Part shown: positions 1,645 to 62,441 of the stretch, piece by piece
Numbering within the stretch: the first letter of the stretch is position 1
Layout of the letters: each line of letters begins with the position of its first letter
Origin: Ylistrum balloti
Lineage: Eukaryota
DNA: 64,000 nt
Reading direction: 5' to 3'
Assembly (NCBI RefSeq): GCF_031769215.1
Contig: NW_026783133.1
Location: 1-64,000, forward strand
Made by a program: the position numbers and the translations under genes
Notes under the pieces: generated by a model
Databases searched by the model: none
Told to the model about the DNA's origin: nothing
Seen by the model: only the letters and a program-made list of their open reading frames with translations

Positions 1645-1728
1645 TTTGGATGTTTGAGTCATGCAGCATCCGGCGGTCACATAGATATTGTTAGACTACT
1701 ACTGGACAGGGGAGCTGATCCAAATAAG
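1645..1728 (+). CDS. Ankyrin-repeat internal exon 1 (84 nt, phase 0): FGCLSHAASGGHIDIVRLLLDRGADPNK
   Basis: Branch point and acceptor gctaacctttattacag| and donor AAG|gtaagt bound an open 28-codon frame matching the ANK consensus L-x-x-A-A-x-x-G-H-x-D-I-V-x-L-L-L-x-x-G-A-D-x-N. The rest of track ORF 1654..2094 is intron read-through. Confidence 0.92.
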
Positions 1729-2409
1729 GTAAGTTTCCTTTTATTCATCTTCTTATACATGTTTTATTTATTTTTCTCAAGACATAAAATGAATTCTCTT
1801 GTTTTTCAATATCTTTTTGTTTGTAAATACATAAACTTCCGTCCCATGTCTTCAATCTCTACATTTTGCCTGCTACATGCTAATAGATTAGTAACTCGAT
1901 TGAGTATGGTTGGTGCTTATTGTTGTTTTCATGCAAAAAAGATACAGGCACTTCCAAACATAACTAAATTAAGTCATCGTTTAACATCATGTAGTCAGAT
2001 TTATTATCTTCAATCTATTCCATTACTGGAGAAATTTGTAAGCAGGTGTAAGATTGGTTTTGTAATCAATGTTATAGTTAGCATAAGTCTCTAATGATAA
2101 AGCTTAACAACTGTCATCGTTGTTGTCGTCGATACATTCATGATAAAAAAAATCATCATACACATACACAGCATACATATGTATTATTATTTTGAAAACA
2201 CATAGACCACTGGCACCACGACAGTATGCCGGTCTTTCACCTGACATGTTAAACTATTTAGATTTCCGGGTTTAGTTTATATAATTTAATGTTGTTAGTC
2301 AGAGTCTACGTTATGTTCATGTTGCTTTCTTTGTAGAGGTACCACACTGAAGTATCAGCATCTCATGAAACCACGTTCTCTCTCTTTCTCTGTATGCGTA
2401 TGTCTGTTG

Positions 2410-2413
<4 letters not shown>

Positions 2414-2467
<54 letters not shown>
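2414..2467. repeat. (GT)27 microsatellite
   Basis: Directly visible. Confidence 0.99.
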
Positions 2468-2469
<2 letters not shown>

Positions 2470-5400
2470 CTTTATTTACGAATGTGTTTATATAGGTATG
2501 AGTGTTTAGTGTGTCTGTGTGTGTGTAAAACCATCTCCAAAAATATAGCGATAATGTCGATGACCGATGATGATGAGGTGGATAATATTGATAGTGGTGG
2601 TCGTTAGGACGACAGTGAGTGAATGTAAGCGAACTTGTGGTATGTTTATATGTATGTGTGGAAAAATAAAAGAAATAAAAAAACATGCAACTGCAGGTCA
2701 GTGTCAACAGAGATATATGGAAAAATATGTTTTGATGAAGTACAAGATTAAACCTTAAGGAAAGTCCTCGATTACGCACATGCAACAGAGAAATGTAATT
2801 GTCCTCAAGTTTTTAATTTCTCAAAACATATCAATAAAATAAAAAATTCAACACTGAGAGATTAAAGTTTGGTTTTACAAGTTAGCAGAGTAAATCATGA
2901 CATTTGCAGATATATATATACTTTTTAACATTGTCCCTGTTTGTTTCATATGTGATTATTCATGAACAGCATTGGATATTATAACAAATCATTGTTAATA
3001 TTAATATTTTGTGTTAAGATACAGTAAAATGATGACCAAACTGAAACACTGTTTACGAGTTACATAATTTGTTAACAATGCGGAATTCCTACAAATCCAT
3101 TACGTTTCTTAGATCATAGCAGCATATCTTGGAATCTCTACTATTTTACGAAAAATACGAGAATCAATATATCTTGCTGATAGGTCCCTAGGAATCAGCA
3201 CGGCATGGTCGATAATTATGTACATGAGGTCTTATTTGTATAATCAGTCTAACAATATCTTCTGATTATTCAAAATGTGTATAGTTATGATATTTAAGGG
3301 AATTTGTTCCACAGATGAGATGAAGACTGATACATTTAGTGATAATTAATCTAAAATAACGGCCATCTGGGGACAGAGAGATTAAAGCGTTTAAACTACT
3401 GCTATACTTGTTTCTAATTATTCAAATCTTAAAAATCGGTAAGAGATAGTTTACATCATATTTAGCATGATGTAGGCGCGTTTCCTTATTTTAATGGATG
3501 AAATATTTCAGAACTTTCCTGTCATTATTTTTTCCTTATTTTAAGGTTTTGTTGAATATTTGTCTTTAGCTTTGGATGGCATTTCCAAAATATCCTTTAA
3601 CACTTTTGATAGGTGTGGTTTTAAGCATATGTCAGTTACTTATATTTCGTTTGATGACAAATGATTTCTAGAATGTTAATATTTCACTAGTATAACATAT
3701 AGATACTATTTCTCAGGTTGGAAAATATAGATTGTCTTGACCAACAAAAGAGGTCACAGAACTAAACTATGGTAAGACCCTTTAAATGGCCTTTAACCCA
3801 TAACCAACATACACAGGGTGACGAATGCCGACAGACGAATTACCTTCCACCATGAATACGTTATAAAAATGTACTCAGTAAAATTCTGGTTTTCAGAAAT
3901 GGTCAAAATTGTAATAGGAATCCCTATGAGCCTTATCTAAATTTATTTTTTCAAGGTGGAAAGGGTAGATATTTTACAATAAAGAATTTTTGTATTTCAT
4001 TTCACAGGGCTAAGTTTGTTAAGACTTATCAAATGCATCCTTTTAATGACCAACATGATGGCTATATTTGGCATGTCGTATACAGATACAATTGCGACGT
4101 TTGGTTTTAAATTAAAAATCATTTAACATCCTATTAACACATATCGTGATAAATGGACTACCTCCGCATGCATGCAATATAAGTGCGTGCGTTGAATCCT
4201 GCTTGAAAGAGGCTGCGGTATGTTCGTGAACGTTTTTCTATGGTAGCGTCGAACTGAAACCTACTTAATAATGGTAGCACACAGATGAACTTCCGACGAA
4301 TCCTATAAGGACCCTTCAATATGTCATAATACTACACTATCAAAAGGCGAGCCAGTCTTTAGAGTACCAACATACTTAGCATTATGCAACGGGATATTAA
4401 TTACAACGATGTGCAATGTTATTTCTTGGTCAGAGGATAAATCCAAAAGTCTTCCTGATACACCACATTTCATGTCTTAATACACCTCGTTTGCATTTGA
4501 GGAGGTGACGTTACTTTCATAGATAGACTTATATTAAGATGACCTGTGTTGTTGATGCAGTATTCCAAAATTCTATAGGTAGTTACAATGAAATGTCCAT
4601 CAATAATGTTCTACCATACTTGATCCATAACCCTTTTTGTGGTGATCAGATGAAAAGGGAATGTGAATATGGAGTTGCAAAGCTGCTAATTGTACTCTAT
4701 CTATGAATATTTCCATGTTGTATATTGGGTGAATAAACCTATACCCGACAATAAGATTAACAAGCATGAGAGCACCGGCCTCCTACATGATTAAATTGCA
4801 TGCTACGTTAACATAGTGTTATTATATCAATTGTCAGTGAATGATCAATTACCATTGTTGCATTTAAAACAGATGTCTCCTTTTTGTCATCGACTGCTCA
4901 ATTTTCTTTAGTAGAAGTACTGATATAAAACCTAACAACGCATTAATAAGTAATTTGCAATCATTGCGTAAGACTGATCATGTTATTTATGTTATAGTTA
5001 GCTTAATTCTCCAATTGCCATACAACAGCTTCATGATGAAACGCTTCAACATACAAAATACATATCAATATATGTTTATTGTTTGATAAACAATTTACAT
5101 CACAACGGTATGCAGTTCTCTCACACATGTTATAATTGAAATTGCACGGATTGTTTTTTTATGTTTTAATGCTGCTTGAAAAAAGCTGTGATATATTCAA
5201 GAACCATCCTTTGTAGTGGTACCACACTGAATTCTACTACCTAAATTCCCTAGTTGGCCACCCTATCTTATCACAATATTTCGATAACGACTGAATCTCA
5301 AAATAAAGCTAAAACAATGCCAGTGTAAAGGTACACATATAGAAAAGCTTATGTTAATAGAAGTAAACAGATTAAACCTTAAATGACTTCATCGACTAAG

Positions 5401-8400
5401 CATAAGCACATGCAATAGGGATAGTAATGTTCCAGATTTCTTATTTTCTGGAAATAATAACCTTCATGAGCATACCTCCGTTGGTTTTGTTAAAACGTTC
5501 AACACTTATAGGTCCATGATTGAGATGTAATTGTAAAAAAATGCTTGATTATGTTTCATGGTAAGCCATTTGGTTCATTTTGAAACCTAAACATGTCAAT
5601 GATTTATCTAACTGAAAAAAAAAAAAAAAATCTCTCAAGTGGCCATAGTTAAGATCTAGATGTTAAACCTGGTGTGGCCGTTACAGCTTACATACTCATA
5701 TTCGATGTTGTTCCATGTACACAAGTTTCGTTATCATAAAATTTACAGATATCCATTCACTTCCTTAACGGTGTCCCTGTTAATATCATATCATATTGGG
5801 TTGTTCAACAATGGAAGGTAATATCATAAAGAATACTGTCATCGTTACTATCAAAGTTTTGTGTTCGGATAATACTATAGTATCACAGCGAGAAGATGAC
5901 CAAACAGGAACACTGTTTAAAACTTATTACAATATGTTTACAATGTTGAATTATTACTAATCAAACACTTTTCTTGGATCACAAAAAAGCCAAAGTCGTG
6001 GAATTTGGGGGAAAATGCAACTGTGTAACCAAAAGGCCTAGTATCGTGATATTTGACTGATAGATTCTAGAATTCAGCAGGACGTGTTAAATATTCAAGT
6101 ACACACTAGTCTTATTTTTATTATTACAACAGTTTCTGGTTATTCAAAAAGTGGTATAATCATTATATATAGCAGTTTGATTCATTGGATGACATGAAGG
6201 CTGACACATTTTGCAGTTATTGTATCTTACCTACATTTACTGTCAAACGGGGTCAAATAAGTTAATGGCGTCAAACGATTTCTAATTCACAAAGATTTTG
6301 ACGGTCAATGATATAAAATATAAACATGGAAATCATTGAACACCAGTATAATCGCAAAATGTTTCAAGTTCCTTCGTTCTCTAGGAATAAATATTTGGAC
6401 ATAGGTACCTGGTGTTGGTTTGTAGAAAGTGTCTTTCAAATACATATCCCCGAATCTACACTGGCAAAATGAACAAAGATTACAAAGCGCATTATTTTCT
6501 TTGATACTATATTAGTTATAAGTACACGGTTGATATATTTACATTTGTATAGAGTAAATTATGAATACGATACAATGAATCATTGTTTCATGGTCATGTC
6601 ACTTTTCATCACTGGATTTGTAGAGCTATGCTTGTCCGTCTGCTCTGTTTTTACCTAACCAAATCCAATCTTGTGAACATCGCTGCAGAGCTTTATATTC
6701 ACCTATAAGTGTCAAAACATCCAGTTTAATCCAGATTCTGCCTTGCAGCAGTAAAAATATATAAGTGAGCTGATGGTGTAGGGCATCGTCCTAACCTCCG
6801 TCTGATATTTTGAACTTACGACTTATATAATCTATGAGACAAAAGTCACGATATATGGATGGTCGCTTTCTGGAATGCAATTGCGTATACTGAGGTGTGC
6901 AATAATGATGAAAATGATAATGGTTTCTCTGATTAAACGAAAGACAATAAATAATAATATTTGACTGACAAGTTTAAAGACAAGCAAAATGTAGAACGTT
7001 ACAAGCGATTTATTCGTATTCATCATGGTGTTTTGATGTATACTTCATTAGATAAAGTCCGACAAGAAATTGCTTACATCCATACAGTTGGCAACTAGGT
7101 TTATTAGGTATAAAAACAATAACGAAACTTATTAAATCATGACTCTAGTCCTCCCCGTATTTATATTATGACATTTCTATACATCACTTAGGATTTTTCT
7201 CAGTTGCTTTCTAGGCTTTCATATTTAGACCCATAGCATCACTTACGTTGTCAGAAGGTGCAGTTTAGTTGATCGTTTGGCAAAACTTTGTCCTACTCTA
7301 AAATTGCTGAGCATTAGAAAGGTATGTATTGTATTCTAATTGATCAAAATGTTTCTTATGATTATTAGCTAGACATTTCGAACATTTTAATACACAATAT
7401 CTGCAAGGTTCAAGGTAACAGGTCAGCTATTTTTAATCATTGTGTGTTTAATAATTCTCATTCAAGACGCCAATGTACATTATGCATGTTGTCGGTCATC
7501 GTAACATACCTCAACCTATCTCTCTTGGTACTATGCTTTGTCAAGCCATTTATTTACTTATCTATTTGTTTATCTTTAAATGATATTCTTTATCCATACA
7601 ACTGATCCAACATCTATGTATGTCTTGTTTCCGTTAGTTTTAGTCTACAGTACATACGTTTTAAGAGTTTCCGGACGTAGTGTAAACGTTGATTCCTAGT
7701 TTAAGTTAGCAATATTAATTTTCCCTTAAAACTCTGTTGTCAGATATCTGCTTTTATATTTTTCATCTCAGTCTCTGATGCTGATAACCAATTAATTAAT
7801 TACCCAAATCAGCTGAGATTGGACAGATATTTCTATCTCGCAAATAATTTTTTTTTTAGATTTTATTAAAAATGTGTTTTCTAAAATTCAGTCGGCTCTG
7901 TGTATCCCTTATTCTTAACTTAAATACAGTAACTAACGTAATGTGGTATAGATGTATGTGTATCTGATGATATATTGAAATAAATTGCCTATTTCATTTG
8001 AGGATCAATTGTCCCCTGTCTCTTTCTCAGCCTCTTCAAAACTTGAAACAGTTATGTTGGTTGTTTGGTAACAGTTTTCTCGTTGCCCTGTGTTTTAAGA
8101 ATACACATAGGATATTATTCCATATTCCCGAAACTTCTGGATAAGCAGTTTCTTCTTTGAAAGACACAGATGTATCTTTATCGTGAGAGCGTAGGCAACA
8201 GCGTTTCAACTCCCTTTCCTTGGACTAATGTTAATATGTAGTGGTTATATAAGTTAGACATTTCTGGTTGTACCATCTCGAAGCATTTCTAGACATTCGA
8301 CTGAATTACTTAACCACTTATATTAATTGCGTTCTGGTAATTCAGTCCACACGTACCGCATATATCTACACACTATTATGACTTTGTTAAGTAACTATAC

Positions 8401-10551
8401 ATGTTGATCTTCATGCTGTCCTGTGATAGAGCTTATAACTGTACTCAGGTAAAAATTGACTATTTCGCCATTGACCAACAGAGCAATTAACTAATCGGTG
8501 TCGCTGCAATTGTAGGTCATGAATCATCTTCTCTAGCTCGTGTATTCACACTGTTTGTAATGAACATCTCTTATACCTGAGCCAATTCTAAAAACGATAC
8601 AATCAAAATTAATCACATTGGTTTTTAATTTCATAAGCATCAAGATATTGTTTGTTGATTTATTGAAAACATCCGGATAAATGTATCTAAAGAAATTATT
8701 GATTAGGAATCGAGGCTCATGGACTTTGCTTACAGTTGTATGATACATTGAAATTTCTTTAAAACTCAGGCAGGAGTTGAAAGTTCTGCTGATTACATAT
8801 CATTATGAGATTCCTTTTTCATGGAGCCTGACTTTGTCAGGTTAAATGACAGCCGCGATGGTTTTCTCGCTAAACGTTATAGAAGTCAACATGTACATTG
8901 TCTATATAATTATATAATTAGCCTTTGCCAAGAGTGTCATCTTATCAATAGTTTCCAGATGTACAATAATTAAATAGTTATTTCTAAATATAACGTTTTG
9001 GTGATAACATTTATTTTTATAAGAAATTCATTCACTCGAGTTTATCTTGGATTAATTAAAATGAATGGTAACTTTTTTTTCTCTAATCATGATGTTCCTA
9101 ACACTTTATATATGAATTGATACAAGGTCATTGCATATTATGCCGGGAAATAGTTAAGATATTTCACAAGTAATACAATAGGTAAATGCCGGAGCCAACT
9201 ATTGCAAAACAAAAAAAAATCTATCTTTTCAACTCTACTAAACTGCAGCAAGATTTAGGACCATGCTATTTATGTTAAATCCCAAAGAATACCTGCTCGT
9301 TCATGGCAATACTGAATACTGATATGAATATAAATTGCCACGAAGGTGGGGTTCCAAACCATAGTAAATCGAATTATCAAACTGGATATAACGCTATTGC
9401 ATAAAACTAAGGCAGTGACTAGATTAATATGTGAAGCTAAACAATAATCAGAAATCTGTAGCTGAATATAATTCAGCAGTGTTCTTCGAAATCGCAAAGC
9501 CATTTATCTTCTCATTTGAAAAACAATATCCAGAAATATTAAACCAACATTGTCCACATGTACTTTATACAAGGTTCCTTCAGAATGTCAATCATTTAAA
9601 GTTTTGTTACACAAATTCAGTGACAAATGTGAACATGTATAGACAACTTGAAATATATCAACCTGTTGCATGACATTAAAATAATATATAATAGTCTTGA
9701 GACCTATAATCCCTAAGACAAAAATCGTATCCTGTTAATAGGAGTCAAATACTAAAAGCGATGTCATTCACATATATATGTATATTTGGTAGTTATCATT
9801 ATGAGACCTATAATCCCAATGATGCTTACCAAGAGAAATAATTTCCTCAAAAACCAACCATCAAATGATGACCAAATTAAAGCGGGAACAAGTTTTTAAA
9901 GTTATCAAAAATGTAAGTAAAACAATCATCCATGGAATGACTAGAACTAATTCCAATAAACGTTTAGGAGGCAGGTGGGGAGGTGGTGGAATTTAGGCGA
10001 GCTACCTTTACCTGGCAAATCCTCACTGGAACGGAAACTGGTTAATGCAGCAAGGGAAGATTACTCTATGCAGTCAGGGGGCATTACTCTTATCACTAAT
10101 ACACTTGAGGTTGCATTCCACCATCTCACCATTCCCCATAACGAAACCACTTAATAATGGTTTTCCATAAATAATTTTACACTATAAAAATGTTACTTAC
10201 GTTAAATCCCAAAGAATACCTGCTCTCTCGTGGCAATACTGAATAAAAACAATAACCCCGAATTGTGTGTAAATGTCGTTTATTAAATATAAACGACTTC
10301 AGGTAATACAACAATATGTAAACCCAGAGACCAATAACCCCATAGGTCTATACAACATTAGAGACATACATTAAGTAGACCCAGAGGCCAATAACCCCAT
10401 AGGTCTATATAACATTAGACATTTTAGGTCAGACATGATGATATGAATATAAATTGCCAAGGAGGTGGGAATGTGCCCCCCACCCAGGTATTTGGGACTT
10501 AAGAAATAGTACCGTTAAAAATAATCAGATGACAAAAAGCAAACAAGGCAC

Positions 10552-10848
10552 TCAGACCTGATGTCCTGTCAAGGTGGGCAAACAAAGATATCTCCGAAAA
10601 GCATTTGATTTCCACCTGCCCATCCGTTGTATTGTATTATCCGGAATACCTGACATGTGTGCAAATGATGCAGCACCGATATGAAAACTATGACTCTTGT
10701 ATTTGTGAGGGTCTAAGTTTGAAGCAATCAAATTTCTGTTAAGTTGTGTTGAAAAATAAGCCCTAGAGATAGGTTGACAATTAGGAAAACAAAATAAGGG
10801 TCCATCTGCTGCACCACGGACTTTTACATAATCTAGCATGGCCTGTAC
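10552..10848 (-). pseudogene. Tyrosine recombinase C-terminal fragment
   Basis: VQAMLDYVKVRGAADGPLF...HSFHIGAAS...IQRMGRWKSNAFRRY. The H-x-x-R box reads HSFH (Arg replaced by His), the GRW and catalytic-Tyr region are present, and the N-terminal half is missing. Confidence 0.88.
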
Positions 10849-10888
10849 TTAAATGATTTATCGTGAAGAAAATATCAATTCTACCCCC

Positions 10889-11311
10889 TTAGCTTTGTAA
10901 ATCCAGAACCGTTGGTCTCTGCTCAAAAACCAGTGACCCCAAGTCGACAAACTTGTTAGCCCAGATTTGGGATTTCCCCTTAGCATCTACATCGCTGTCT
11001 ATTGGCCATGATGTAGTACCGCTACCTGATAATTCTGAGTTCTGTCCTAACGGACGCACTAACTCTGCCATTGTAAGATCCACACTAGGAGGGTCATCAT
11101 GGTGGTTTTCCACAGGGTCATGGGCGGTAGATTCCATTGTATTACTGGCTGTCGCCTTTTCTGAATTATTGCTGGGTTTCATAAGCTCAAATAGCTTAAC
11201 CGCTATGTCATTAGCTAGGGAGTCTCGTTTACTTGGCTGTGGTACCTCCTTCGGCTGGGTCCGTTTTTTTGGCAACCAGTTTGGTTCGGTCGATTTCCTT
11301 TTCCTTGGCAT
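10889..11311 (-). pseudogene. Truncated gag-like ORF1 of the DIRS/Ngaro element
   Basis: Basic MPRKRK start, a low-complexity linker, then PIDSDVDAKGKSQIWANKFVDLGSLV, which resembles DIRS-order ORF1 as I recall the family. It ends at the internal deletion. Confidence 0.6.
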
Positions 11312-11360
11312 GTTGATTTGGTGAAATATTCAAAGATAATAATTATGCCACGGGTGATTA

Positions 11361-11868
11361 ACACTATGACAACCACTGATGTCAAATACATAATCAGATA
11401 TAGAAACAACCACTGTTGTCTATAGCAATATGACAACCACTGTTGTCAAATACATAATAAGATATACAAACAACCACTGTTGCCAATTATATATAATCAG
11501 ATACACTTGTTGTCAAATACAAAATTAGATATACCGACAACCTCTGTTGTCTATAACAATATGACAACCAATGTTGTGAAATACATAATCATATATACAA
11601 AGAACCACTATTGTCTGCAGCACTATGACAACCACTGTTGTCAAATATATAATCATATATACAAACAACCACTATTGTCTGCAGCACTATGACAACCAAT
11701 GTTGTCAAAGTACATAATCAGTTGTACAGGCAGCCACTGTTGTCAATTATATTATCCAACATACAAACAACCACTGCTGTCTGTAACGATATGACAACCA
11801 TAGTTGTTGTCACATATATGTGATCAGATAACTTTTGTTGCTGAATGCTATGACAACTACTCTTGGCA
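11361..11868. repeat. ~64-bp minisatellite with palindromic core GACAAC-CACT-GTTGTC
   Basis: Cores alternate with ~22-nt and 11-nt AT-rich linkers that resemble each other. About 8 higher-order units. Confidence 0.95.
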
Positions 11869-28364: not shown

Positions 28365-28915
28365 GTTCAAGATCATGCTGGACCTGCGTATTCCTTCGTC
28401 TAGAGCTCCGACAAAAAGTTAATTTTCTACATATCCTTATAACTGGATATAAGTGGACGGTTGATTAGTTTGTAACATCTGACTTCTGAAATTCAAAATG
28501 GATTTGTGTAATTAGGCAGCTGAAGTTAGGACAATGACCTGAGACCCTACGTAGTGACTACTGTTAACGGCGTACTATATACTGTACATATACATACCCG
28601 GATTGCTATATCTGTGAAATATATGGACACTAGAACAGACTTGATGAAATCACTGCCATGCTATCTACCCTCATTACAAAGGGAGACTTTGATTCCAAGA
28701 TAAAGAATCTCAATGAAAGTATCGGAGAGGAAAACATGGAATAAATGGATGAATTGAAAGGTTGAGTTTTTGAATTGGAAATGGAAAACGAAAATCTTCG
28801 TCAGACGTTGTAACTTGGAGACACAAGTCAGTAATTTATAGTGTGTAAAGGAGGGCATGGATGCCCGTTATAACGACTTGGAACAACACGGTCGAAAGAA
28901 TTCAAGAACAATTCT
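28365..28915 (+). mobile_element. LINE 5' end / ORF1 remnant (coiled coil plus NDLEQHGRKNS)
   Basis: Heptad-rich frameshifted sequence ending in the LEQxxRKNS motif typical of the start of the ORF1 RRM. The left end is approximate. Confidence 0.65.
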
Positions 28916-35099: not shown

Positions 35100-35103
<4 letters not shown>

Positions 35104-35167: not shown

Positions 35168-35169
<2 letters not shown>

Positions 35170-42843: not shown

Positions 42844-43140
42844 TCAGACCTGATGTCCTGTCAAGGTGGGCAAACAAAGATATCTCCGAAAAGCATTTGA
42901 TTTCCACCTGCCCATCCGTTGTATTGTATTATCCGGAATACCTGACATGTGTGCAAATGATGCAGCACCGATATGAAAACTATGACTCTTGTATTTGTGA
43001 GGGTCTAAGTTTGAAGCAATCAAATTTCTGTTAAGTTGTGTTGAAAAATAAGCCCTAGAGATAGGTTGACAATTAGGAAAACAAAATAAGGGTCCATCTG
43101 CTGCACCACGGACTTTTACATAATCTAGCATGGCCTGTAC
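42844..43140 (-). pseudogene. Tyrosine recombinase C-terminal fragment (duplicate)
   Basis: Translation identical to 10552-10848. Confidence 0.88.
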
Positions 43141-43180
43141 TTAAATGATTTATCGTGAAGAAAATATCAATTCTACCCCC

Positions 43181-43603
43181 TTAGCTTTGTAAATCCAGAA
43201 CCGTTGGTCTCTGCTCAAAAACCAGTGACCCCAAGTCGACAAACTTGTTAGCCCAGATTTGGGATTTCCCCTTAGCATCTACATCGCTGTCTATTGGCCA
43301 TGATGTATTACCGCTACCTGATAATTCTGAGTTCTGTCCTAACGGACGCACTAACTCTGCCATTGTAAGATCCACACTAGGAGGGTCATCATGGTGGTTT
43401 TCCACAGGGTCATGGGCGGTAGATTCCATTGTATTACTGGCTGTCGCCTTTTCTGAATTATTGCTGGGTTTCATAAGCTCAAATAGCTTAACCGCTATGT
43501 CATTAGCTAGGGAGTCTCGTTTACTTGGCTGTGGTACCTCCTTCGGCTGGGTTCGTTTTTTTGGCAACCAGTTTGGTTCGGTCGATTTCCTTTTCCTTGG
43601 CAT
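43181..43603 (-). pseudogene. Truncated gag-like ORF1 (duplicate)
   Basis: One amino-acid difference from copy 1 (T/N). The frame here stays open upstream into the minisatellite (track ORF to 43705). Confidence 0.6.
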
Positions 43604-43652
43604 GTTGATTTGGTGAAATATCCAAAGATAATAATTATGCCACGGGTGATCA

Positions 43653-44412
43653 ACACTATGACAACCACTGATGTCAAATACATAATCAGATATAGAAACA
43701 ACCACTGTTGTCTATAGCAATATGACAACCACTGTTGTCAAATACATAATAAGATATACAAACAACCACTGTTGCCAATTATATATAATCAGATACACTA
43801 ACAACCACTGTTGTCAAATACAAAATTAGATATACCGACAACCTCTGTTGTCTATAACAATATGACAACCAATGTTGTGAAATACATAATCATATATACA
43901 AACAACCACTGTTGTCTATAGCAATATGACAACCACTGTTGTCAAATACATAATAAGATATACAAACAACCACTATTGTCTGCAGCACTATGACAAGCAA
44001 TGTTGTCAAATATATAATCATATACAAACAACCACTATTGTCTGCAGCACTATGACAACCACTGTTGTCAAATATATAATCATATATATATTGTCTGCAG
44101 CACTATGACAACCACTGTTGTCAAATATATAATCATATATACAAACAACCACTATTGTCTGCAGCACTATGACAACAATTGTTGTCAAATATATAATCAT
44201 ATATACAAACAACCACTATTGTCTGCAGCACTATGACAACCAATGTTGTCAAAATACATAATCAGTTGTACAGGCAGCCACTGTTGTCAATTATATTATC
44301 CGACATACACACAACCACTGCTGTCTGTAACAATATGACAACCATAGTTGTTGTCACATATATGTGATCAGATAACTTTTGTTGCTGAATGCTATGACAA
44401 CTACTCTTGGCA
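43653..44412. repeat. ~64-bp palindromic minisatellite, expanded copy
   Basis: Same unit, about 12 units, ~250 bp longer than the paralog. Confidence 0.95.
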
Positions 44413-49300: not shown

Positions 49301-52300
49301 TAGAAACTTCGGTCTGCGAAAATGTACTTTAACTAAAGTTCAAGGTAACAGGTCAACTTTTTAATCATTGTGTGTTTGATAATTCTCATTTAAGATGCCA
49401 ATGTACCTTACACATTATACATGGTGTCGGTCATCGTGACATAACTCAAATTATCTCTCTTGGTACTATGCTTTGTCAAGCCATTTATTTATTTGTTTAT
49501 CTTTAAATGATCATTTTTATCCATTCAACTGATCCAACATCTGTGTATGTCTTGTTTGTTTTAGTTTTAGTCTACAGTTCATACGCATTAAGAGTTTCCG
49601 GACGTAGTGTAAATGTTTGTTCCTAGTTTAAGTTAGGAATATAAATTTTCTCTTAGTATTCTGTTAGTGAGGTACCATATCATTCTTAAAAAAAAAAAAA
49701 ATTCTCTAGTATAAGAAGGATGTTCACGTAGTCAAGCGTAACCTTTTTCATTCTTATTATTATGTTTTTGTGTATTGTAATATTTCTGTATTTGTTCGTT
49801 TAATTTGTTGGGACGTGGTAAAAGATATATCAGTTAAGTATGCTCATTTTTTTTGTTGTAATTGGTTCAAATTCAATTCTCATTGAAAAGTTATCTTTTA
49901 TATATGTTTTGACAATTTTACATCAGTTTCTGTTGCTGATAACCAATTAATTGATCAAATCAGATGAGATTGAAAAGATCACGCAAACATTTTTCTGAGA
50001 TTTTATTAAAAATGTGTTTTCTTAAATTCAGTTCCCTCTGTGTATCCCTTATTCTTAACTTGAATACAGTAACAAACATAATGTGGTATACATGTATGTT
50101 TATCTGATGATGATATATTGACACGAATTGCCTATTTCATCTGAGGACCATGTGCCCCCTGTTTCTTCTCCAGCCTCTTGAAAACTTGAAATCAGAGTTA
50201 TAAGTGTCGTTGTTTGTTTGGTAACAGTTTTTCCGGTTGCCCTATGTTTTGAAAAAAAAAAAAAAAATACATGATCTCATTCCCTATTCCCTAATCTTCT
50301 GGATAAGCAGTTTCTTCTTTAAAAGACACAGATGTATCTTAATAGTGAGAGCGTGGGCAAGAGCGCTTCAAGTCCCTTCCCTCGGACTAATGTTAGTATG
50401 TAGTGGTTAGATAGGTATCGTTGCAGTTATAATCAGCAAAACATTTCTGGTTGTTCCATCTTGAATCATTTGTAGACATTCGACTGAATTATTTGACCAT
50501 TTATATTACGTGCCTTCTGGTAATTCATTCCACACCATTCATTTATATCACACACTCTTATGACTGTGTTAATTAATGATATATGTGGATCTTCATGTTG
50601 TCCTGTGATAGAGTGTAGTAAAGAGAGAACAAAGTAGAATAGATGACACTCACAGTAGTAATATTATTTCAGTATATATCGAGGATCGAAAAAACTGATT
50701 CAATCTCCTTCATTCTCCAGGAAAGATATTTGGCCAGTAGGTACCTGGTGTCGGCTTTTAGAGGTTGTCTTTCAAATACATAATCCCGAATGTACACTGG
50801 CGAAATGAACGACAATTTCAAAGCGCATTATTTTCTTTGATACTCTGTGAGCGATAACGATACGTTTGAGATATTTGCATTTGTGAAGAATAAACCATGA
50901 ATAAGATATGATCAATCATTGTTTGCATTAAATGTTCAGGTCTCTTTAATTTTAAGCTGGATTCTGTCTTGCAGAATGACAATAATAAAAAGATATCAAG
51001 CATTGCACACTCCAAATATCTTGTTAATCAAAACCTATTTATCAACCACTGTTGTTCATAAAACAATATAAAAGTCGTGGTGGTTACATATCAGTGAAGA
51101 TATCGAGAACTGAAACTTTTTAGATGATTGACTGTCGGGATACCTATGAAAATGTCACTAGAGGCTCATACAACACTGAAATATTTTGCTTATATGCTAC
51201 TATTGAGAGTTATGACTGATTTACCACGGAATCATTTTGATTTCACCATAATGAAAGGCTACCCCGAATATTTCAGTTCATGTACTTGATATATTTAAGT
51301 ATCAACTTAAATCGGCCATATCCCAGATTTGCATTGACCTCACTTAGCTGTGCATTACTCATAAGTCATAAAAACTGAACCGCTCTGCAATTCAGAAATT
51401 TTAGAAACGATGAAATAGTGACAAAAAGAAATTAAATTACATCATACATCTATTTCGTACTTACACGAATATATCTATAAAATATATTATAGTTTGCAAA
51501 TATGACGTACTGGTAAAATGAATAAGGTACATCATAAAACCTGATAATGGAGGATATAGTATATTTCTGTTTAGGTCCGCTTCTCTCTTGATTCACCACC
51601 TGTTAAATTGAAAAGATTTCAATATTTTATTGAGATTTTTACAAACAAAAAAAACAAAAAACAAAAAAACAAAAAAATCAGACCACCATACTAAATACTA
51701 ATACCTCTATTCATGCATTTGCTTCATTATAGATGCCAGACATTAATTTGTATTGCCATCTGATTGGATTTCCAGTAAATATATTGTAACCATATTTCCA
51801 ATACACACTGCATTGCTGTGACAATAATTATATTGAATCATGTGAAATTTAACGGTCCTGACCATGGTATGTATCTGTACTTTTTTAATGAGATATGGAT
51901 CAGATATGGCAGTAATGGTTCTATAAACTTATTTCAGTTAAAGTTGTGTTTGTTTCCTGTGCTTATACATAACAATCTTCAATTTATGGGGATATTTTGT
52001 CAGGGGGTTTCATAGATATAATGTTTTTTTTCTGATATAAATATACGTTTTGAAGGTAGTATATTAAAACATTCTAAACACATGAAATAGGTATATTATA
52101 TACAGATGGTTCAATCAAGGTATATTCATGGTGCCATTTGCATTGATTCTGAAAAACCATTATTTCAGAAATCTGAATAATCAATAAGTAATCAATTAAG
52201 CATTATGAAAGATATCATCTTGGTATTTCTTGATAAAATACCCTATACACATCGATATTTCAGGTACAATCGATGCAAAAAACTGTATTATACGAGATAA

Positions 52301-55300
52301 TGAGTAGTATGGGCCACGTCGACAACGTGGATATCAAGAGTAGAGCTAATTATTTCATATCAGTGACTTTCGTAACTATTTGTAAAGATACAAATAGCGT
52401 AACAATGTATTCAGATGTCTCAGATTTCTATCGCCGAGTAGCATACGCAACCTTATATATAATTTAGAAATGAAAGAAAATATCAAGTATTTACAGGCTG
52501 TACAAGTAAGGATACGATGATCAACTACTGCACAAGCTTAGTCAGCATAGCTCATTATCACTTTTAACAGGCATTGATGTATGGTGTCATCTTTTTCAAA
52601 ATAGTTAAATTTCTGGAAGCTGATATAACTACATAGCATGCGGTATACTTAGTCCACTTACGTGCACCTCTTTAGATACAAAAACACGTGTCCACCTTTT
52701 ATGAGTTTTATTCCCCTGATTGATATTTTTTCTGTAGTGAAACAATGTATAACGGTAAAATGCTATCGAGCAGAAAACGTCTACGAATAACAAAAGAAAA
52801 AAAATAATTACTTTCTTGTTGAATGGTATTAAGATCTATGTTGATTTTTCAAACGTGTAAATAGCCTATGAAAAATGAAACAACCGTGTCGACAGAATAA
52901 AACGAAAACCACGCATCATCATGAATCAATCTCCCCTTTTAAAATCAAATTAAGAAAGATAGTCATAAAACCGTTACTTTTTAAACACTTAGACAATGTT
53001 ATTCTTACTACATATTTTTGTCAAATTATTAAAGGCAAAGTGCACATGAACCCAAAACATCAAGTGGGGAATATACGTATCGACTATTGTAGTTTTAACG
53101 GTAGAATATAAGAGCGCAACACTGATGGTGATAAGTTTGTCAGTCGTATATGAGCAAGCAAGAATTACTAAACACCAAAAAAAGTAAAGTTGACAACATT
53201 GATATTCATGAACTGAAAATATGGTCTTATATTAGTATGATATTTTATTGGAATGCCACGATCAATCAAGCAAATAATATCAGTGACTTTGGTCATTTGA
53301 CTGCCATCTCGAAACGCTTACGTGCAATGTCAATGCCTTCACCGAATAAATTCAGCCCTGGAAAACATCTGAGTATGATTATTGATTATAACATATAAAT
53401 AACCAATTGTACAAAAATGGTGATATGACAGCAATTATACAATTGGATAATATGATGATCGAGAACTGAATACAATGTAAATCGATGCAATTTTGTTTTT
53501 AAACTTGTCATAGTTTCGAAGCTAGATTTGTGTGTTTGACATCGGATTACCTCGACGGGAAATAATATGGGTTTTCAATTGCGGTCTGTTGTATAAAATA
53601 TAGTATCATAATTCATAACCTTACTTTTTCCAGGCAAAATATTCTCTAAAATTATATCAATGTCAAAGTATTGCTGAAAATAAAGAAGCAATTGTGAGTA
53701 TATTTATGAGCATTATAAAAGTGACATACACAAAATAAATTTCAAACCCATATCCACAATTACAAGCGGGCGGTTTTTTTCAATACCAAGAATATACCAA
53801 CATGCCAACATAACTATAATCTAAACTCAAATTCCATAAAAGTGGTAAATATGGACAAAAGAAACAAGAAGACAACTCAAAAGTTACAAGAGTAATAATA
53901 CCAGGTGCCATGTAAACCTTGGTCAATCCAAGAAAGTAATGTTACCTTCACAAATAAGAACAATGTATACGACAAAAGAACCAACAGACAAACTAACGAG
54001 TATCAAACACATCAAGCTGCTTACTTCACAAAGAATATGATGTTTCACAATGAAATCACTGTCTTTTCCATTATTTTTTATGTATCATCCTTAATTTGAT
54101 TTTAAAAGAGGAGATTAAATCACATGATGATGCGCGATTTTCGTTTCATTGTGTGGACGCGGTTGCTACCTTTTCCGTATAGGCTACAAGTTTGCACTTT
54201 TGAAAAATTAACATTGATGTGAACGTCAATTAACATGAATGTATTAATGTATTTTTGTCCATAATGCAGGATGTTATTTCCATGCATTCTTTGCAGTTAT
54301 TTTTGTAGGGATCAATATTAGCATACACGTGCTGGCTAATCTTATTTATTCATTTATTTATTTATTTTTCGTTTTACCAGCTAACTAAAGACACTTCGAT
54401 AGCATTTTGCATTTCATATAGTAATATATCATATCAGGCAAGTTAAAAGTCATTATTAATTATTTCCTCACCCCAGGGGAATACATGAGGTGCGCGGTTC
54501 AATGCCCCTGAAAGTAGAGCTAGTTGTACTTCTTTTCTTTTAAAGAAGTTGAAAGATGGGTTGTTCTGTGCTTGTGAGAGACCCTAATAAAATAATCCAT
54601 GTTCTTGCATGAGCCTTGTGCTATTTCAAATTCATCTAATGTAACTTTGAGCAGAGTACCAATACATAATAATTATTATCAAAGAAAATTCGTTATACAT
54701 TATTTCACAACTGAGCAATTATCAATCAGAGGAATAAAAGGTGGACGCGTGTTTTCTTGGTGTATCTAAAGAGGCGCACTTAGGTGGACTAAGTATACCA
54801 CATGCTATGTAGTTATATCAGCTCATGGAAATGTATCTATTTTGAAAAAAAAAGTAATACCATATATCAATGTCTGTTTAAATTGATAATGAGCCATGGT
54901 GACTAAGCTTTTGCACGAGTTGATCGTCGTATCCTTACGTGTACAGTCTGTAAATGCTTGATATTGCTTACAGGTCTGAAGTATATGTTAAGTTGCGTAC
55001 TTTAACCGGCGAGAGAAATCTAAGACATCCAAATACATTGTTACTTTATTTGTATCTTTACAAATAGTTACAAAAGTCATTGATTTGATAATTAGCTCTA
55101 TTCTTGATATCCACGTTGTCAACGTGGCCCCTACTCCTCATTATTTCGTATAATACAGTTTTTTTTCCATCGATTATACCTACAATAGCGATGTGTATAG
55201 GGTATTTTATCAAGAAATACCAAGATGATATCTTTCATAATGCTTAATTGATTATTTATTGATTAATCACATTTCTGAAATAATGTCTTTTGAGAATCAC

Positions 55301-56186
55301 TACAAATTGAATCATCTTTATATAATATACCTATTTCATGTGCATATGGTGTATATGAAATCTTTTTCAATATAACAGATGGTGAATCAATTTGATGTTT
55401 TTCATGTTGAATATAACAGTTTTGTTTATGCTTATTTCTTTTATCTTTTTTTTTTTTTTTTTTAGTGGTATGGTAGTCGATGCTTCGTCGACATTAATTG
55501 ATTTATTTGCGCTAAGTACTTGAAATCTTACTTAAAGTTTAGACTTAATTAAATTTTAATGTTAGAATAACAAATGCAATAACATTCAAAATTATTAACA
55601 AATGATACTTTCTGTAAGATATTGCATTCAGAGTTTCTCTTTCTTATATTGTTTAAAATAGAAAACCATTTAATAAGTTACATACAAATTTATGGTTTTG
55701 CATCATATCACATTCACATATCTGATTAAAAACCAAACTGGTAAGTTACAATAATACAGGTACACAATGTATTCTTTGTTCATATATAGTTGCTAATATA
55801 CATGTATTATTCCATGTTGTATGGCATCAATAGCGTTTGTTTGATTAGTTTTTGATAACCTATTTCACTCATTTCGTAGCTATAAACACATATTGCGACA
55901 ATGGGAAATGAGAACGAATCTTCCGTTCGTTTTCTTATTCCTTCCCTCTACAGCTATGTTCCATTGGGGTATATAGTATCTGGCGATATAAGCATAATAC
56001 AAAATATCAACCAACGACGAAAATGATTATTAACATTACTAACAATACTTAATATATATCTAGTTTATAGGAATAAAAATATCAACAGTGACATTCTTAA
56101 TGATGACGGAACATTACTTGATTGATAGTGAATATGTACACACAACTAACTTTCATGCAACAAATTAACATCAACCTTTACTACAG

Positions 56187-56270
56187 AGTAATTGTTCATA
56201 ACACGCAGCACAATTCAGTACCAAAGATGTCGTTAGACTTCTACGGGACTGAGGGGCTGGCCTTCATTCC
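56187..56270 (+). pseudogene. Dead ankyrin exon: SNCS*HAAQFSTKDVVRLLRD*GAGLHS
   Basis: Acceptor caacctttactacag| is nearly identical to that of exon 1. It aligns without gaps to exon 1 (C3, H6, A7, A8, D14, V16, R17, L18, L19, D21, G23, A24 shared). It has two in-frame stops and no canonical donor at +84. Confidence 0.8.
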
Positions 56271-57149
56271 TGTTATACTTATGTTTGTCTTACATTTTTT
56301 TCTCTATATATCTGTAATTATCACAAAGAATGATATTTTTTATCATCTTATTGCTAATCATACATCACCTACAAGCTCTGTTGTCATACCCATGTATAAG
56401 TTCATGGTCAATAGATAAGTAATTCGAATTAGTGTGAATGTGATTCCATTGTTGCTAACAATGTTCGTACTTAAGAACTTAACGTTGCCTGCGTGGATTG
56501 ATCACAGTATAGATAGATGGTATTGTTAATAAAGCAGCTTTAAAAACACACACCCTGTCATTTAATGTTGGTATTGTTCGGGAGTCTAAATAAAATATTG
56601 CCCTTTTTAGCAAATGTCATTCAATTTTGAGTTTGAATTTAGTAAATCACATGTAACATGATTAAAATCACGCGCGTGCTGAATTTAGTGGGGTTCTATT
56701 ATAAACATTTTATACTGTTCCATTTTTATTCTACCTAAATATTGACTATAGACTGCAAATGATGAAGCATCTAATCATTAATTGAAGAGCAAATCTGACA
56801 CACAGCTGACATATGAGAAAATGTAAAAAAATATAATTAGGCCAATTAACAAGGTTTATACACAACAGGGTAATGATTGTGGAAACAGGGTGATTATTGA
56901 TGGGATCTACTAAGCACACAACTGAGTGCCATTATCTATCAGTTGGTATTATTCACCCATTATCTACGCAATGATAGCAAAATTTATCACTTGAATTGTA
57001 TTCTTCCGTACAGTTTGGTACATATGGTCAACATTACGAGATATATAGAGTTTTCATAGTATAAACTCTTATCTCACTTTCCTCAATCATTGGAAGTTGT
57101 GGTGATCACTGACAGTTTTTTAGGCTATAGCTTCCAAATTATCTTTAGT

Positions 57150-57830
57150 AGATCATTGAGGTCAAGATCATGCTGGACCTATGTATTCCTCTGTCTAGAG
57201 CTCCGACAAAAAAGTTAATTTTCTACATATCCTTGTAACTTCTTCATTTATCTTTTTGAATGGGGTCCGAAATACGTTGACGGTTGATCAGTTTGTAACA
57301 TATGACTTTTGAAATTCAAAATGGATTTGTGTAATTTTTGTGTAATTAGGCAGCTGAAGTTAGACAATGGCCTAGGACCCTACGTAGTGACTACTGTTAA
57401 CGACGTACTATATATATATATTGTACCTATACATACCTGAATCGCTATATCTGTCGGTTGAAAACAAAGCACGGGAGGCTCACCAATTAAGAATACGTGG
57501 TCTGACAAGAATATCGAGAACAGACTTGATGAAATCTCGACCATGTTATCTACCCTCATTACAAAGAGAGACTTTGACTCCAAGATAAAGAATCTCAAGA
57601 AACGTATCAGAGTGGAAAACAGGGAGTAAGTGGATGAATTCAAAGGTTGAGCTTTTGAATTGGAAATGGAAAAAGAACATCTTCGTCAGACCATTTGTAA
57701 CTTGGAGACACAAGTCAGTGATTTACAGTATGTAAAGGAGGGCATGGATGCATGTTATAACGACTTGGAACAACACGATCGAAAGAATTCATGGTCTCAA
57801 GGACAATTCCGCATCGGAATCGGTTGAGGA
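57150..57830 (+). mobile_element. LINE ORF1 remnant, paralog
   Basis: IENRLDEISTMLSTLITKRDFDSKIKNL...ELEMEKEHLRQTICNLETQV...YNDLEQHDRKNS with two stops. It is not followed by ORF2 here. Confidence 0.68.
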
Positions 57831-58326
57831 ACGTGTGGACAAAATCGTGAACTGTGTGTCTTCATAACTTGATATTTTCGTATATTAGCGTGGACGGCAA
57901 CCTCTTTACAATTCTGAATGATGGCAGAAAACGACTTTTTTTATGGCATGACACTTATACCGATTTTATTCAGTTTGCATGTAGATATGAATGTTTCTTT
58001 GCTATGGATAGTTCGTGTTTTGTGATATATTGGACCTATAATTCTGACGTTTGGTAAGTCTATAGTATATATATCAAGGTTTTTGTTACAGTAATTCGAC
58101 GTACGCAGAGCCTGGGTATCGCATTGAATATTATGTGGAGTGTTTCCCGCTACTTCCAGAACTTTTCTCTTCTCATTTGGTACATTTTTATCGTCAGTAT
58201 CGAAAATACTATTTGACTTGAATCATTGTAAAATTGTGTCTTTTTTCAAAGTTGTTTTCAATGTGTCCGGAAAATTATTTTTCTGCCGGAACCATTAGTT
58301 ATTATGCCTCCACTTCCGGTACTTAC

Positions 58327-58370
58327 TTCCTGCTCTAGTGATCTGCGGGTATGGTCCTAGTGTAATCTAC
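58327..58370 (-). other. Candidate second antisense exon (44 nt)
   Basis: On the minus strand: atactttctcatatcag| and GAA|gtaagt. The donor is deleted in the paralog at ~29255. Confidence 0.3.
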
Positions 58371-59326
58371 CTGATATGAGAAAGTATGTATTTTGCCTGT
58401 ATTCATTATATGATGACCATGGTCAAAGTATATTTTAATTTAGCTTTCTTACTGTTTTTACTTTCTGTATCTGCTCCGTTCCTCTTTGTCTCCGGGAATG
58501 ATCATGGATCTCCATTTGAAAGAAACGACCTGACAACTACAGACGAGTATCCCGTCATGATCTCTTGTCGATGCCTCTCCACGTACGCTATCCGTCGTTC
58601 TACCGGTCTGCTTTTGTAAACGAATACCTTTACCGTTTATAGATAGACATGATGAATTCCATGTATGTACACCAGGAATCACAATAAATAGCACTTTAGG
58701 AATGTAATGCACACAGAGCAATATATTGCGCATTTTAATTTGTGCCGACCTTCATCATGACCCAAATCTATCGATAACTTAACTGGACAGTAGGCGAAAT
58801 TATGGTTGAAAAGAGAAGTTAGATTGGTCAAAAACAAGGTGAGGGACCTTTCGAATAAGATTATATATATCTTGCTCTTTGTTTAAATACGTTGATATTG
58901 CTATATTAACAACACTTTCAGACTAGTGTATATCAGAATGGGGATAGTTTCACCTTATTCAATTGCTAGAATAAAACTCTGTATTGAATAAACATAACCG
59001 TATAAACGTAAAAGCAATATTAGGGCATGTAACCTAATCCTCCATCATTTTGAAAAATGTTATTCGTGAAAAAACAAAAAAAAAAAAAAAAAAAAAAAAT
59101 CTTTATAAGTCGTGCACAAATTAACCAATTTTCCGTGACTACATATCTATGCGTTCTTTTCCATTCAAACTCGTGTGAATTTCTTATTATCAACAAAGCA
59201 TGTTGGAGACAATATTTTGCTACCAAAAACCAGTCTCATAAATATTCCACGGCTTTCCCAACTCGAAGAGGACGGGTTATTGCAATGCTAATGGGAGGTA
59301 GCACTCAATAACAGGTAGTTACTTAC

Positions 59327-59541
59327 CTCGAAATTTACAAATCGACTCTAAGTCAGTTAACTTTATGTCTCAACGGTACGGGAAGAGTTGATGATAGACC
59401 AAAAATCCGGTCATCCATCGGTATCGTTGCGATGTCAACATCGGTTGACTGGAGTTCCCAGCTTGTGTGACACGAGATTATTGACAACCGAAAAAGCACG
59501 AAATAACAATGGTAATGGAAACCTTCGAATCCTGCCATCAA
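59327..59541 (-). other. Candidate antisense exon (215 nt, no read-through frame)
   Basis: On the minus strand: branch point and acceptor ccctaatctatttctcacag| and donor GAG|gtaagt, in a locally GC-richer stretch. Confidence 0.45.
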
Positions 59542-60369
59542 CTGTGAGAAATAGATTAGGGAGGCAAATTTACGCCGATGCCGCAATTACGTTGATTTGA
59601 CATTGCCACGTTGACGTCGAATCTGCCGTGTGTGATAAGTTGACAGCACATGTGCCCAGACGTATGAGACGTTGGAGTTCCATCTTTATTATGGAATCGA
59701 GATTTCTTTTATACTAGATACACATATGTACATACGAACAAACGGAGAATTTCCCCTCCCCCGACATTCGTTGCAATCTGATAATAACAATCATTACTGA
59801 CGTTAACATTTAATTAATAATTTATCTGATATGAAATTTGGAAATACCTATAGTGTTGGTGACAAAATCATGTAAACACTGAACCAGCAGGTCCTTGACA
59901 ACGCGTTCAACATTTGTGTAGTTGGTAAAGTGATTTAATAAATTGGTGCATTTTTATCTAATTCCATATCTTGTTGAGTTATCTTTAGATTTTTTCAGCC
60001 TGTCTCTAGATATATCAATGTATTATTGATAGAAAGTTACTGTGGTATGGCTTTTTTATTCTGTTATATTTGATTCCGTCAATTTCATTTTGGGACTACG
60101 AGAAAGATAAACATATACCGTATATATTAAAATCTAGGTCGCAAGGTATTTAACTGAACAGCGTAAGGTGACGTGACGTAGTAATTTAGAAATAGGTTGT
60201 AATGGGAAAGAACCCCTATCTTCTCTCTACATTCGATTTCCTAACGAATGAATAAATTCTGTCTACTGACAATGATACCACTAAATCAAAGCACTTATGA
60301 CGATATACTTTGATGAAACGATTGTCAACTCAAATGGAGTAAGAGCGTTAAAAAATTGAACAAAAAATA

Positions 60370-61730
60370 CAAATTCAAAGATGAAGGTTGATAAAAATAA
60401 CGGAAACAGCAATAATGATCTCATCGAGAAATAGCATAGTGAAGTATGCAGCTTGATGTGCTTGATAATCGTTTGTTTCTCTGTTGGTTCTGTTTGGGTA
60501 TACTCATTTGTGAACGTAACATTACTTTCTTGGATTGAACAAGGTTTACATGGCACTTGGTATTATTGCTCTTGTAACTTTTGGGAGTCTTCTGGTAAAT
60601 CTTTCTTTTATCCATATTTGCCTCGGCTCGAAGGAAAAAGTAAGGTTATGATTTATGATACTGTATTGTAAAACAACGGATCACAATTTTAAAAAAAAAA
60701 TCAAGATAATTTCCGGTGTCAAACGGGCAAATCTGGTATCGAAGGTATGACTAGATTAAAAAAAGACATTTGCATCGATTTTTGTACAATTGGTTATTTT
60801 ATGTTATAATCAATAATCGTACTCAGATGTTTTCCAGAGTTGAATGTATTTTGTGATTGTGACATCCTAATGCCATTGCACTGTCATGGGATATATAGCA
60901 TATTACAGAGAAATAGTTTGCTTGGATCCCACGTCAAAACCGTTCATTTTCATAGATGCATTATATATCTTTTTATAAATCTATACATGAAAGTTGTAGA
61001 AACAAATGGTGATTGCATTAAAACTGCAATAGCATTTTTCTTTTCTGTTTTTGAAAAACAAATACAACTTCAACCGAAGATATAACTACTCTATCATTTA
61101 CCAACTTTTCATGTTGAAAAGAACAATTTTGCTTGTTTTGTTTAATATTTTATATCTTTTCTGTTTTAGTAATTTAGTGATCGATGCTAAATAGACGTTG
61201 ATTTATTAATTTTCGCGGAGTACGTGATAATCATACGTATTGTTTTGGCCTTAATCAGAATATAATGTTAGAATTCCAAATGCAAGGACATTCAAAACTA
61301 ATGTTATTATTATTAACAAATGATATGTTATTTAAATATTGCATCATGGAGCTTCTCTGACTTATATCGTTTACAATATATATCATTTAATGTGTTATAT
61401 ACACTTTGATAACATTGCATCATATTACATTAACATGTCTGATTAAAACCAAACAGATAAGTTAAGATAATACAGATACACAATGTATTGTGCGTTCATT
61501 TATCTGCTATTATACTTGCATTATTCGGTGCTGTATGGTATCAATATCGTTTTGTAATAAGTTTCTGATAAGTATGAATCACTCATTTCGTAGTTATAAA
61601 CACGTGTTGCAACAGTTGGAGATGAAAACTAATCTTCCATTCATTTTCTTATTCTGTCCCTCCTTATAGCTATGCTCCATCGGGGAACATAGTGTCTGGT
61701 GATATAAGCATAATGCAAAATATCAACCAA
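60370..61730 (+). repeat. Third, older paralogous unit preceding exon 3
   Basis: Homologous to 26350-27810 and 55400-56010. It shares the spurious MPCKP ORF. Confidence 0.85.
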
Positions 61731-62357
61731 CTGAAGGGTCTTAAATACCATGACGCCCCCTTTATTAAATGGAATATATATATATAGTGAGAACTATGTT
61801 AACATTTCTATTACGTGTTATGAATAATATTGATATAGCTAAACACGCACAGATAGACATGTCATAGTAGTTTAGAATGAGAATTATGGAGACTTTCTGA
61901 CTTATAGATTGAATAACGGAACTGATTTATACCCGAAATAGTATGCTCTATATCGATATAAAAGTAGCCATGATTTAACTCGGGGTTTAGCCTAAAACTG
62001 TGGAAGAAGAGAAAAATTTGATTTTAAGTTCCTCGCATACATTGTACATTTGATGCTTGCGCCCATCGCATACAGAATTCACTTTTCGATTGGGGATGCA
62101 TTTATTTTATAATCTTATCATAATGAACTGATATAAAAATCAGGATTTCACTGAAGTCAACCATGTAGCCCAACAACACAATCTGTATACTTAATTAGTT
62201 AAATTTATTAGTAAATCCTTTTCCCGTTCTCATATTATACAGAATTACATTTTGAATTATTTCATGTTGATCATCTTTTTCAACATTATTAAACTTGTAA
62301 TGGTATGGAGATTGCCAGCCGTTATGTTGTTAATTAACGATTGCCTTTTCGTTCCAG

Positions 62358-62441
62358 TCTGAAGCTTTAGCAAAAGCAGCAAGAAAAGGACATTTAGAAA
62401 TTGTGAAGTTACTGCTCGACCGAGAGGCAAACCCAAACACG
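62358..62441 (+). CDS. Ankyrin-repeat internal exon 3 (84 nt, phase 0): SEALAKAARKGHLEIVKLLLDREANPNT
   Basis: Acceptor ccttttcgttccag| and donor ACG|gtgagt. Same length, phase and register as exons 1 and 2, with a clear ANK consensus. Not in the ORF track. Confidence 0.9.

Follow-up and report, generated by a model that had tools for sequence, protein, structure and literature searches.

Short ankyrin cassette exons with a hypervariable helix face in a tandemly duplicated locus of Ylistrum balloti, a candidate 5′ repeat array of a scallop ROCO gene

The window analyzed here is the first 64 kb (64,000 nucleotides) of the unplaced contig NW_026783133.1 (C1276; 115,851 bp) in the 648.5-Mb, 1372-contig assembly of the scallop Ylistrum balloti (GCF_031769215.1). 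It is AT-rich (GC content ∼33%), contains no N, and carries on its + strand four homologous 84-nt phase-0 ankyrin segments, three intact (A1, A2, and B) and one dead (D), with gaps of 32.7, 21.8, and 6.2 kb between successive segments (table 1). A first-pass annotation had described exactly these four exons, and its assignment of them to the ankyrin repeats was borne out when the window exons were searched individually against databases: the three intact peptides score 26.9–30 bits (E 5e-7 to 5e-6) with Pfam Ank (PF00023), above the curated cut-off of 21.1 bits, the matches covering only positions 6–29 of a model of length 33. Each intact segment is a symmetric exon of 28 open codons, 84 nt being a multiple of three and the phase 0-0, preceded by a pyrimidine tract and AG and followed by GTAAGT or GTGAGT. 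The scan of the flanking scaffold suggested by the first-pass annotation was fruitful in part, in that three further copies lie beyond the window, all on the + strand (dead D type at 95144, intact B type at 101377, and intact A type, A3, at 111215), and none of the other domains of the protein family described below was found on the contig. A copy of the D exon on contig C345 has likewise lost its donor and has AA in place of the acceptor AG. The possibility that the D type is the first exon of the gene was rejected because the window copy retains its acceptor AG and most resembles an internal cassette.

The copies of the intact exons differ mainly in a few codons. Among the seven A-type copies read, acceptor and donor are the same in all (7/7), codons 12–28 are nearly invariant, and codons 1, 2, 5, 6, 9, and 10 vary. 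These six codons show up to 9.5 nonsynonymous differences per 14.3 sites, whereas the other 22 show 0–2 nonsynonymous differences per 49 sites and ∼2 synonymous differences per 16.7 sites, and the intron near the A exons differs by ∼6%. A1 and A2 are distinguished by three differences, in codons 2, 5, and 6, all of them amino acid changing, with the 400 nt upstream identical and 3 of 388 nt downstream differing; this patch (3 mismatches, P ∼2e-3) does not rank first among the windows of the A1–A2 alignment. Contigs C345 and C1309 align over 6.6 kb with 0.94% mismatches, and no 33-nt window there is as dense in them as the beginning of exon A, which has seven versus four in the runner-up (P ∼1.9e-8). 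When B and its copy at 101377 are aligned over 9.5 kb (0.75%), the first 33 nt of exon B likewise come out as the densest (five mismatches, P ∼4.4e-6). Contigs of run X1, an independent read set, hold a third variant of exon B with nine changes in the exon versus five in 327 nt of flank (P 3.5e-4); translated by hand, every one of these changes an amino acid, and the codons affected are 2, 5, 6, 15, 23, and 24. The dead D exon has no clustered excess, its two copies on the contig (56187 and 95144) being 1 nt apart. Family-wide, the six most variable repeat positions include codons 5, 10, 9, 6, and 2, with position 13 outranking codons 2 and 1.

Because they are spaced i, i+1, i+4, i+5, i+8, and i+9, the six codons are predicted to form one face of helix 1. 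Judging from these sequence comparisons, neutral decay cannot be the source of the codon pattern, which speaks for a framework and splice sites under purifying selection and a surface under diversifying selection, and in turn for the intact A and B exons being translated now or very recently. Conversion of short tracts from one allele to another may contribute to the reshuffling of variants. The recognition role put forward in the first-pass annotation would fit the strong excess of amino acid change at the six helix-1 codons.

The same pattern bears on the idea that the exons are not expressed, being relics of a 5′ gene fragment that segmental duplication has spread and that looks intact because the copies are young. 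Neutral decay would spread changes evenly, whereas here they are concentrated in six codons, change amino acids, and far exceed the intron divergence; the dead exon lacks such an excess, and splice sites and framework codons are kept even in copy pairs with flanks only 84–85% identical by BLAST (∼6% substitutions plus indels). Relics would be in keeping with the omission of the exons from the RefSeq annotation, with a spacing 10–60 times that of the compact relatives described below, and with the fate of the remaining exons, the D type being dead in every copy read and others deleted, but we regard this explanation as quite improbable.

The exons are embedded in a tandem mosaic of 26–39 kb units that makes up C1276, with block identities of 70% to 99% and one block inverted. 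Two pairs of blocks in the window (1–7519 with 32696–40180 and 7863–11744 with 40180–44042) are both 98% identical, and older duplicated intron blocks are 78–91% identical. These blocks, together with the inverted one at 98.6%, agree with the duplicated intron modules that had been proposed around the exons, and the differing exon content of the units agrees with the proposed change of exon number through multi-kb duplication and deletion. Both flanks of the deletion scar in unit I align with unit II (27437–27817 with 55399–55771 and 27857–29254 with 56614–58098), and a 64-bp minisatellite common to units I and II is a possible crossover point. The tandem mosaic, the pattern of exon loss, and the shared minisatellite support an array that grows by unequal exchange of multi-kb segments and loses exons when these are deleted or hit by point mutations.

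Table 1. Coordinates of exons, duplicated units, and other features on C1276, and of exons on the related contig C1076
Feature	Position	Strand	Remarks
A1, intact cassette exon, 28 codons, phase 0-0	1645–1728	+	AG / GTAAGT borders; Pfam Ank 30 bits, E 5.4e-7
A2, intact cassette exon, copy of A1	34338–34421	+	Pfam Ank; AG/GT borders kept
D type, dead cassette exon	56187–56270	+	Two in-frame stops; donor GT changed to TGTTAT; AG kept
B, intact cassette exon	62358–62441	+	Pfam Ank; AG/GT borders kept
Unit I	1–32695		Carries A1; without D and B
Unit II	32696 to ∼71800		Carries A2, dead D, B
Unit III	∼71800 to ∼109570		Dead D and B-type exon; exon A gone without trace
Unit IV	starts ∼109570		Opens with A3
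Head of unit I	1–11744	+	98% to 32696–44042; 96.5% to contig 109572–115851
Head of unit II, with A2	32696–44042	+	94–99% identical to C345:676400–686000
Older intron module	20725–24304	+	91% to 47295–51157
Segment present inverted at 53336–55404	25040–27107		98.6% identity
Deletion scar in unit I	27818–27856		∼840 nt including D exon missing relative to unit II 55772–56613
Start of block with dead D and B	55399–64000	+	98% duplicate at contig 94362–103931
64-bp minisatellite, unit I	11365–11744		98% block ends at 11744
64-bp minisatellite, unit II	43654–44288		Same repeat as 11365–11744
D-type exon, C1076	21963	same as unit tail	From match coordinates
First annotated exon of LOC132563880, C1076	31929–32036	same as unit tail	
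Linker exon, C1076	∼42031	same as unit tail	Opens in phase 0
Roc exon, C1076	42804	same as unit tail	

That the duplication within the window is an artefact of assembly, for example haplotypes laid end to end, seems very improbable. C1276 is a small unplaced 115.8-kb piece of a 1372-contig assembly and other contigs share parts of it at 99–100%, as such an artefact would have it, but the units are structurally unlike one another (I is without D and B, III is without A, and one block is inverted), they diverge by 2–16% along their length, unlike one region laid twice, and the independent read set X1 holds yet another variant of exon B.

Three other features of the units were observed. A 2.07-kb segment stands in opposite orientation in units I and II (98.6% identity), reflecting a recent inversion or an inverted insertion. 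The 64-bp minisatellite unit contains a short palindrome (ACAACCACTGTTGT) and sits exactly at the end of the 98% duplicated block. Inside a duplicated unit, a 95-aa open reading frame at 10552–10839 (− strand) has a weak tyrosine-recombinase (Phage_integrase) match (E 0.006) and could be what is left of an element of the DIRS or Crypton type; among the longer intron open reading frames scanned for Pfam families, this weak match was the only one.

Relatives of the window exons occur in a family of scallop ROCO proteins, GTPases resembling LRRK2 and DAPK1. Contig C603 (263,626 bp) carries a compact member with five consecutive phase-0 exons of ∼78/84/84/84/87 nt (sizes read by eye), introns of ∼0.55 kb, and then a P-loop exon; in the RefSeq model of this Y. 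balloti gene (LOC132558396; XP_060078932.1; P0001) the exons are joined directly to give five tandem 28-residue units followed by Roc-COR. Searched against the full library, the paralogous P-loop exon of contig C1076 returned 20 proteins, and the family was confined to four scallops (Argopecten, Pecten, Mizuhopecten, and Ylistrum) in a word search. The family proteins scanned have Roc in all cases, COR-A in most, N-terminal ankyrin repeats in several, and a significant death domain in one, so that Roc-COR and death, which the first-pass annotation had guessed as partner domains, are indeed domains of this family; no kinase domain is among the Pfam matches of seven family proteins (P0001–P0007). 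Across 15 family proteins, with 1 to 10 repeats each, repeat starts are spaced exactly 28 residues apart in 43 of 53 cases. The Argopecten gene is compact (12.7 kb, ankyrin exons 0.5–1.1 kb apart), and its annotated isoforms X1 and X2 are exactly one 28-residue ankyrin cassette apart, so that for this relative the annotation includes the skipping of a single cassette; its first coding exon, used as a query in the Ylistrum genome, gave no match.

The predicted fold of a nine-repeat Pecten array (pLDDT, predicted local distance difference test, 86.7) has nine helix pairs and zero strands, and its best PDB matches are designed ankyrin repeat proteins (DARPins), ankyrin-R/B, and RNase L, with template modeling (TM) scores of 0.6–0.68. 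This model, which is of the Pecten relative and not of the window exons, is a stacked helix-turn-helix solenoid, and it departs from the canonical ankyrin repeat with its 33-residue period, beta-hairpin, and TPLH motif in having a period of 28, no strands, and variable residues for Thr and His. Hidden 15-nt microexons that would restore the 33-residue period were ruled out, since the RefSeq models connect one 84-nt exon straight to the next and the array folds well with 28-residue units, without strands; on the modeled fold, the five missing residues are a true loss of the beta-hairpin.

Two family proteins, P0003 (Pecten) and P0038 (Argopecten), have the same Roc-COR core with an N-terminal HEPN_DZIP3 instead of ankyrin repeats; the sensor end seems, from these sequences, to have been swapped between family members. 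In Argopecten irradians (CM084265.1; L022:1–6225), a Mab-21 domain gene adjoins a compact ankyrin-Roc-COR gene on the opposite strand. We take the Mab-21 neighbor to belong to the cGAS-like family, and this neighborhood may therefore be immune related. A weak match on contig C316 (L012–L013, 88001–108000) was set aside as an unrelated, ordinary many-repeat ankyrin gene, presumably resembling ANKHD1/ANKRD17.

The window can be related to a Roc-COR gene through contig C1076, for which, as for C1235 and C1126, the layout was derived from match coordinates. C345 has, downstream of its exon A, a unit tail to which C1076:1–5952 is 99% identical, and this stretch of C345 is also 99% identical to window positions 40180–43695. 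On C1076 this unit tail lies 37–43 kb upstream of the Roc exon on the same strand, and the positions of the exons there (table 1) mean that LOC132563880 already has ∼10-kb introns and an array unit directly upstream. The model of LOC132563880 may be cut short at its 5′ end; its first exon bears only a weak likeness to an ankyrin cap, and Pfam assigns Roc and COR-A to the model, the match to death being weak (E 0.0036). The Roc-COR products of LOC132563880, LOC132564976, and LOC132562812 (on C1076, C1371, and a 146-kb contig) share at least 90% identity, judged by which these loci would be either uncollapsed haplotypes or very recent gene copies. A search for contigs encoding the Roc-COR protein P0031 returned no match, and none of the Ylistrum proteins from the family search (three clusters read) carries the window's exons.

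These near-identical loci raise the alternative that the exons come from at least two separate ROCO gene copies or haplotypes, with the contig stringing together 5′ arrays or partial duplicates. The placement of the three loci on three small contigs and the mosaic unit identities of 84–99% are in line with this, as is C1235, which runs parallel to units II–III of C1276 but bears the other variants of exons A and B. All seven exons of the contig, however, have the same orientation (seven of seven), and in the intervening DNA there is neither a start nor a Roc or COR exon, so that no single unit is a gene by itself. We consider this alternative unlikely, if deserving of attention.

Several points also weigh against assigning the window exons to a Roc-COR gene. 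In a tblastn search of 47 family proteins on C1276, only ankyrin exons were matched and zero Roc, COR, or other family exons, and the connection to Roc-COR runs through homology between units, not through contiguity of C1276. The nearest RefSeq Roc-COR model by homology, LOC132563880, begins without ankyrin exons, and the RefSeq annotation passes over those of the window. Introns of 0.5–1.1 kb in the compact relatives contrast with 6–33 kb here. A record search for RNA runs yielded only X1, a DNA-like contig set that gives variants and no splice information. Contigs C1235, C1126, and C1271 repeat parts of C1276 at 95–100%, so that some copies may be alleles and these contigs alternative haplotypes, and short tracts of conversion from allele to allele could have made the differences more clustered.

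On balance we favor, with a probability of about 0.58, the reading that the segments are ankyrin cassette exons from the 5′ repeat array of a ROCO gene specific to scallops, or of a few near-identical copies of such a gene in a cluster, and that the array provides a diversified putative sensor surface. The exons themselves, the architecture of the family, and the patterns of duplication, loss, and substitution are observed, whereas we infer that the window exons are transcribed and spliced, that they are joined to a Roc-COR gene, and that the product has an immune role. The family plan is a series of tandem hairpin-less 28-residue ankyrin units, one per 84-nt phase-0 exon, followed by the Roc GTPase, COR, and a death-like tail. 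In the stretched array each exon sits inside a 26–39 kb unit; on this reading, unequal crossing-over has multiplied the units in tandem and gene conversion has acted on them later, and units shed exons through deletion or point mutation. Intact exons are retained as coding, with conserved splice sites and 22 framework codons, as the six helix-1 codons are driven apart between copies. A variable binding surface acting through a GTPase switch on a death-fold output would make a candidate innate immune sensor. Bivalves have no antibodies and depend on expanded, variable innate receptors, among the candidates for which ROCO proteins are some of the least understood, and an array whose number of exons changes, and whose six surface codons change faster still, has the signature expected of an arms-race receptor.

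A more far-reaching and decidedly tentative proposal, which we think unlikely to hold in full, is that of an animal ROCO sensor assembled from a long array of hypervariable hairpin-less ankyrin cassettes whose content differs by haplotype and, by way of alternative inclusion, by transcript. If true, the set of recognition surfaces coupled to the GTPase switch and the death-fold output would be particular to each scallop, and the family would be an ankyrin-based, animal counterpart of the brown-alga LRR-ROCO (leucine-rich repeat ROCO) receptors. The three exon borders and six codons are concrete targets for cDNA and population work. For the design of repeat proteins, a natural hairpin-less 28-residue ankyrin unit with TPLH positions freed for variation is also of interest.

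Of the systems described so far, the nearest is the LRR-ROCO family of the brown algae Ectocarpus and Saccharina, proposed immune receptors in which each LRR is encoded by one 72-bp exon; the repeat exons are shuffled, duplicated, and alternatively spliced, and sites on the concave, presumed binding face are under positive selection (PMC11378527, citing Zambounis et al. 2012). Common to the algal and scallop families are the ROCO GTPase, the N-terminal repeat array, and one repeat per short multiple-of-three exon. In the algae the repeats are LRRs encoded by 72-bp phase-2 exons in compact genes, whereas the scallop locus has ankyrin repeats encoded by 84-nt phase-0 exons in 26–39 kb units, with splicing predicted. 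One repeat per exon with an excess of amino acid change on the binding face, the pattern of exon-shuffled ROCO receptors, is thus found here with ankyrin instead of LRR. Among molluscs, the Aplysia immunome is reported to include Roc-COR fused to immune adaptor domains (PMC9334734). Neither scallop ankyrin-ROCO genes nor a 28-residue ankyrin unit turned up as the subject of a paper in the literature searches.

DAPK1 (kinase-ankyrin-Roc-COR-death) shares the order of ankyrin, Roc, COR, and death-fold tail, and the Pfam Roc model is named after DAPkinase, but a kinase was not found in the seven scallop proteins scanned, the scallop repeats have 28 and not 33 residues, and the word search found the family in scallops only. 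The canonical 33-residue ankyrin repeats and DARPins have the helix-turn-helix solenoid in common with the scallop-family model, whereas the scallop unit is five residues shorter, has no modeled beta-hairpin, and replaces the Thr and His of TPLH with variable residues. We take variable codons 1, 9, and 10 to correspond to DARPin library positions 5, 13, and 14. LOC132558396 on C603 shares with the window 84-nt phase-0 ankyrin exons (55–63% protein identity), which there lead into Roc-COR, and is unlike it in being a complete annotated gene with ∼0.55-kb introns, five adjacent repeats, and a coiled-coil-like N-terminal region. The new observation of this analysis is that copy-to-copy differences at codons 1, 2, 5, 6, 9, and 10 are almost solely amino acid changing.

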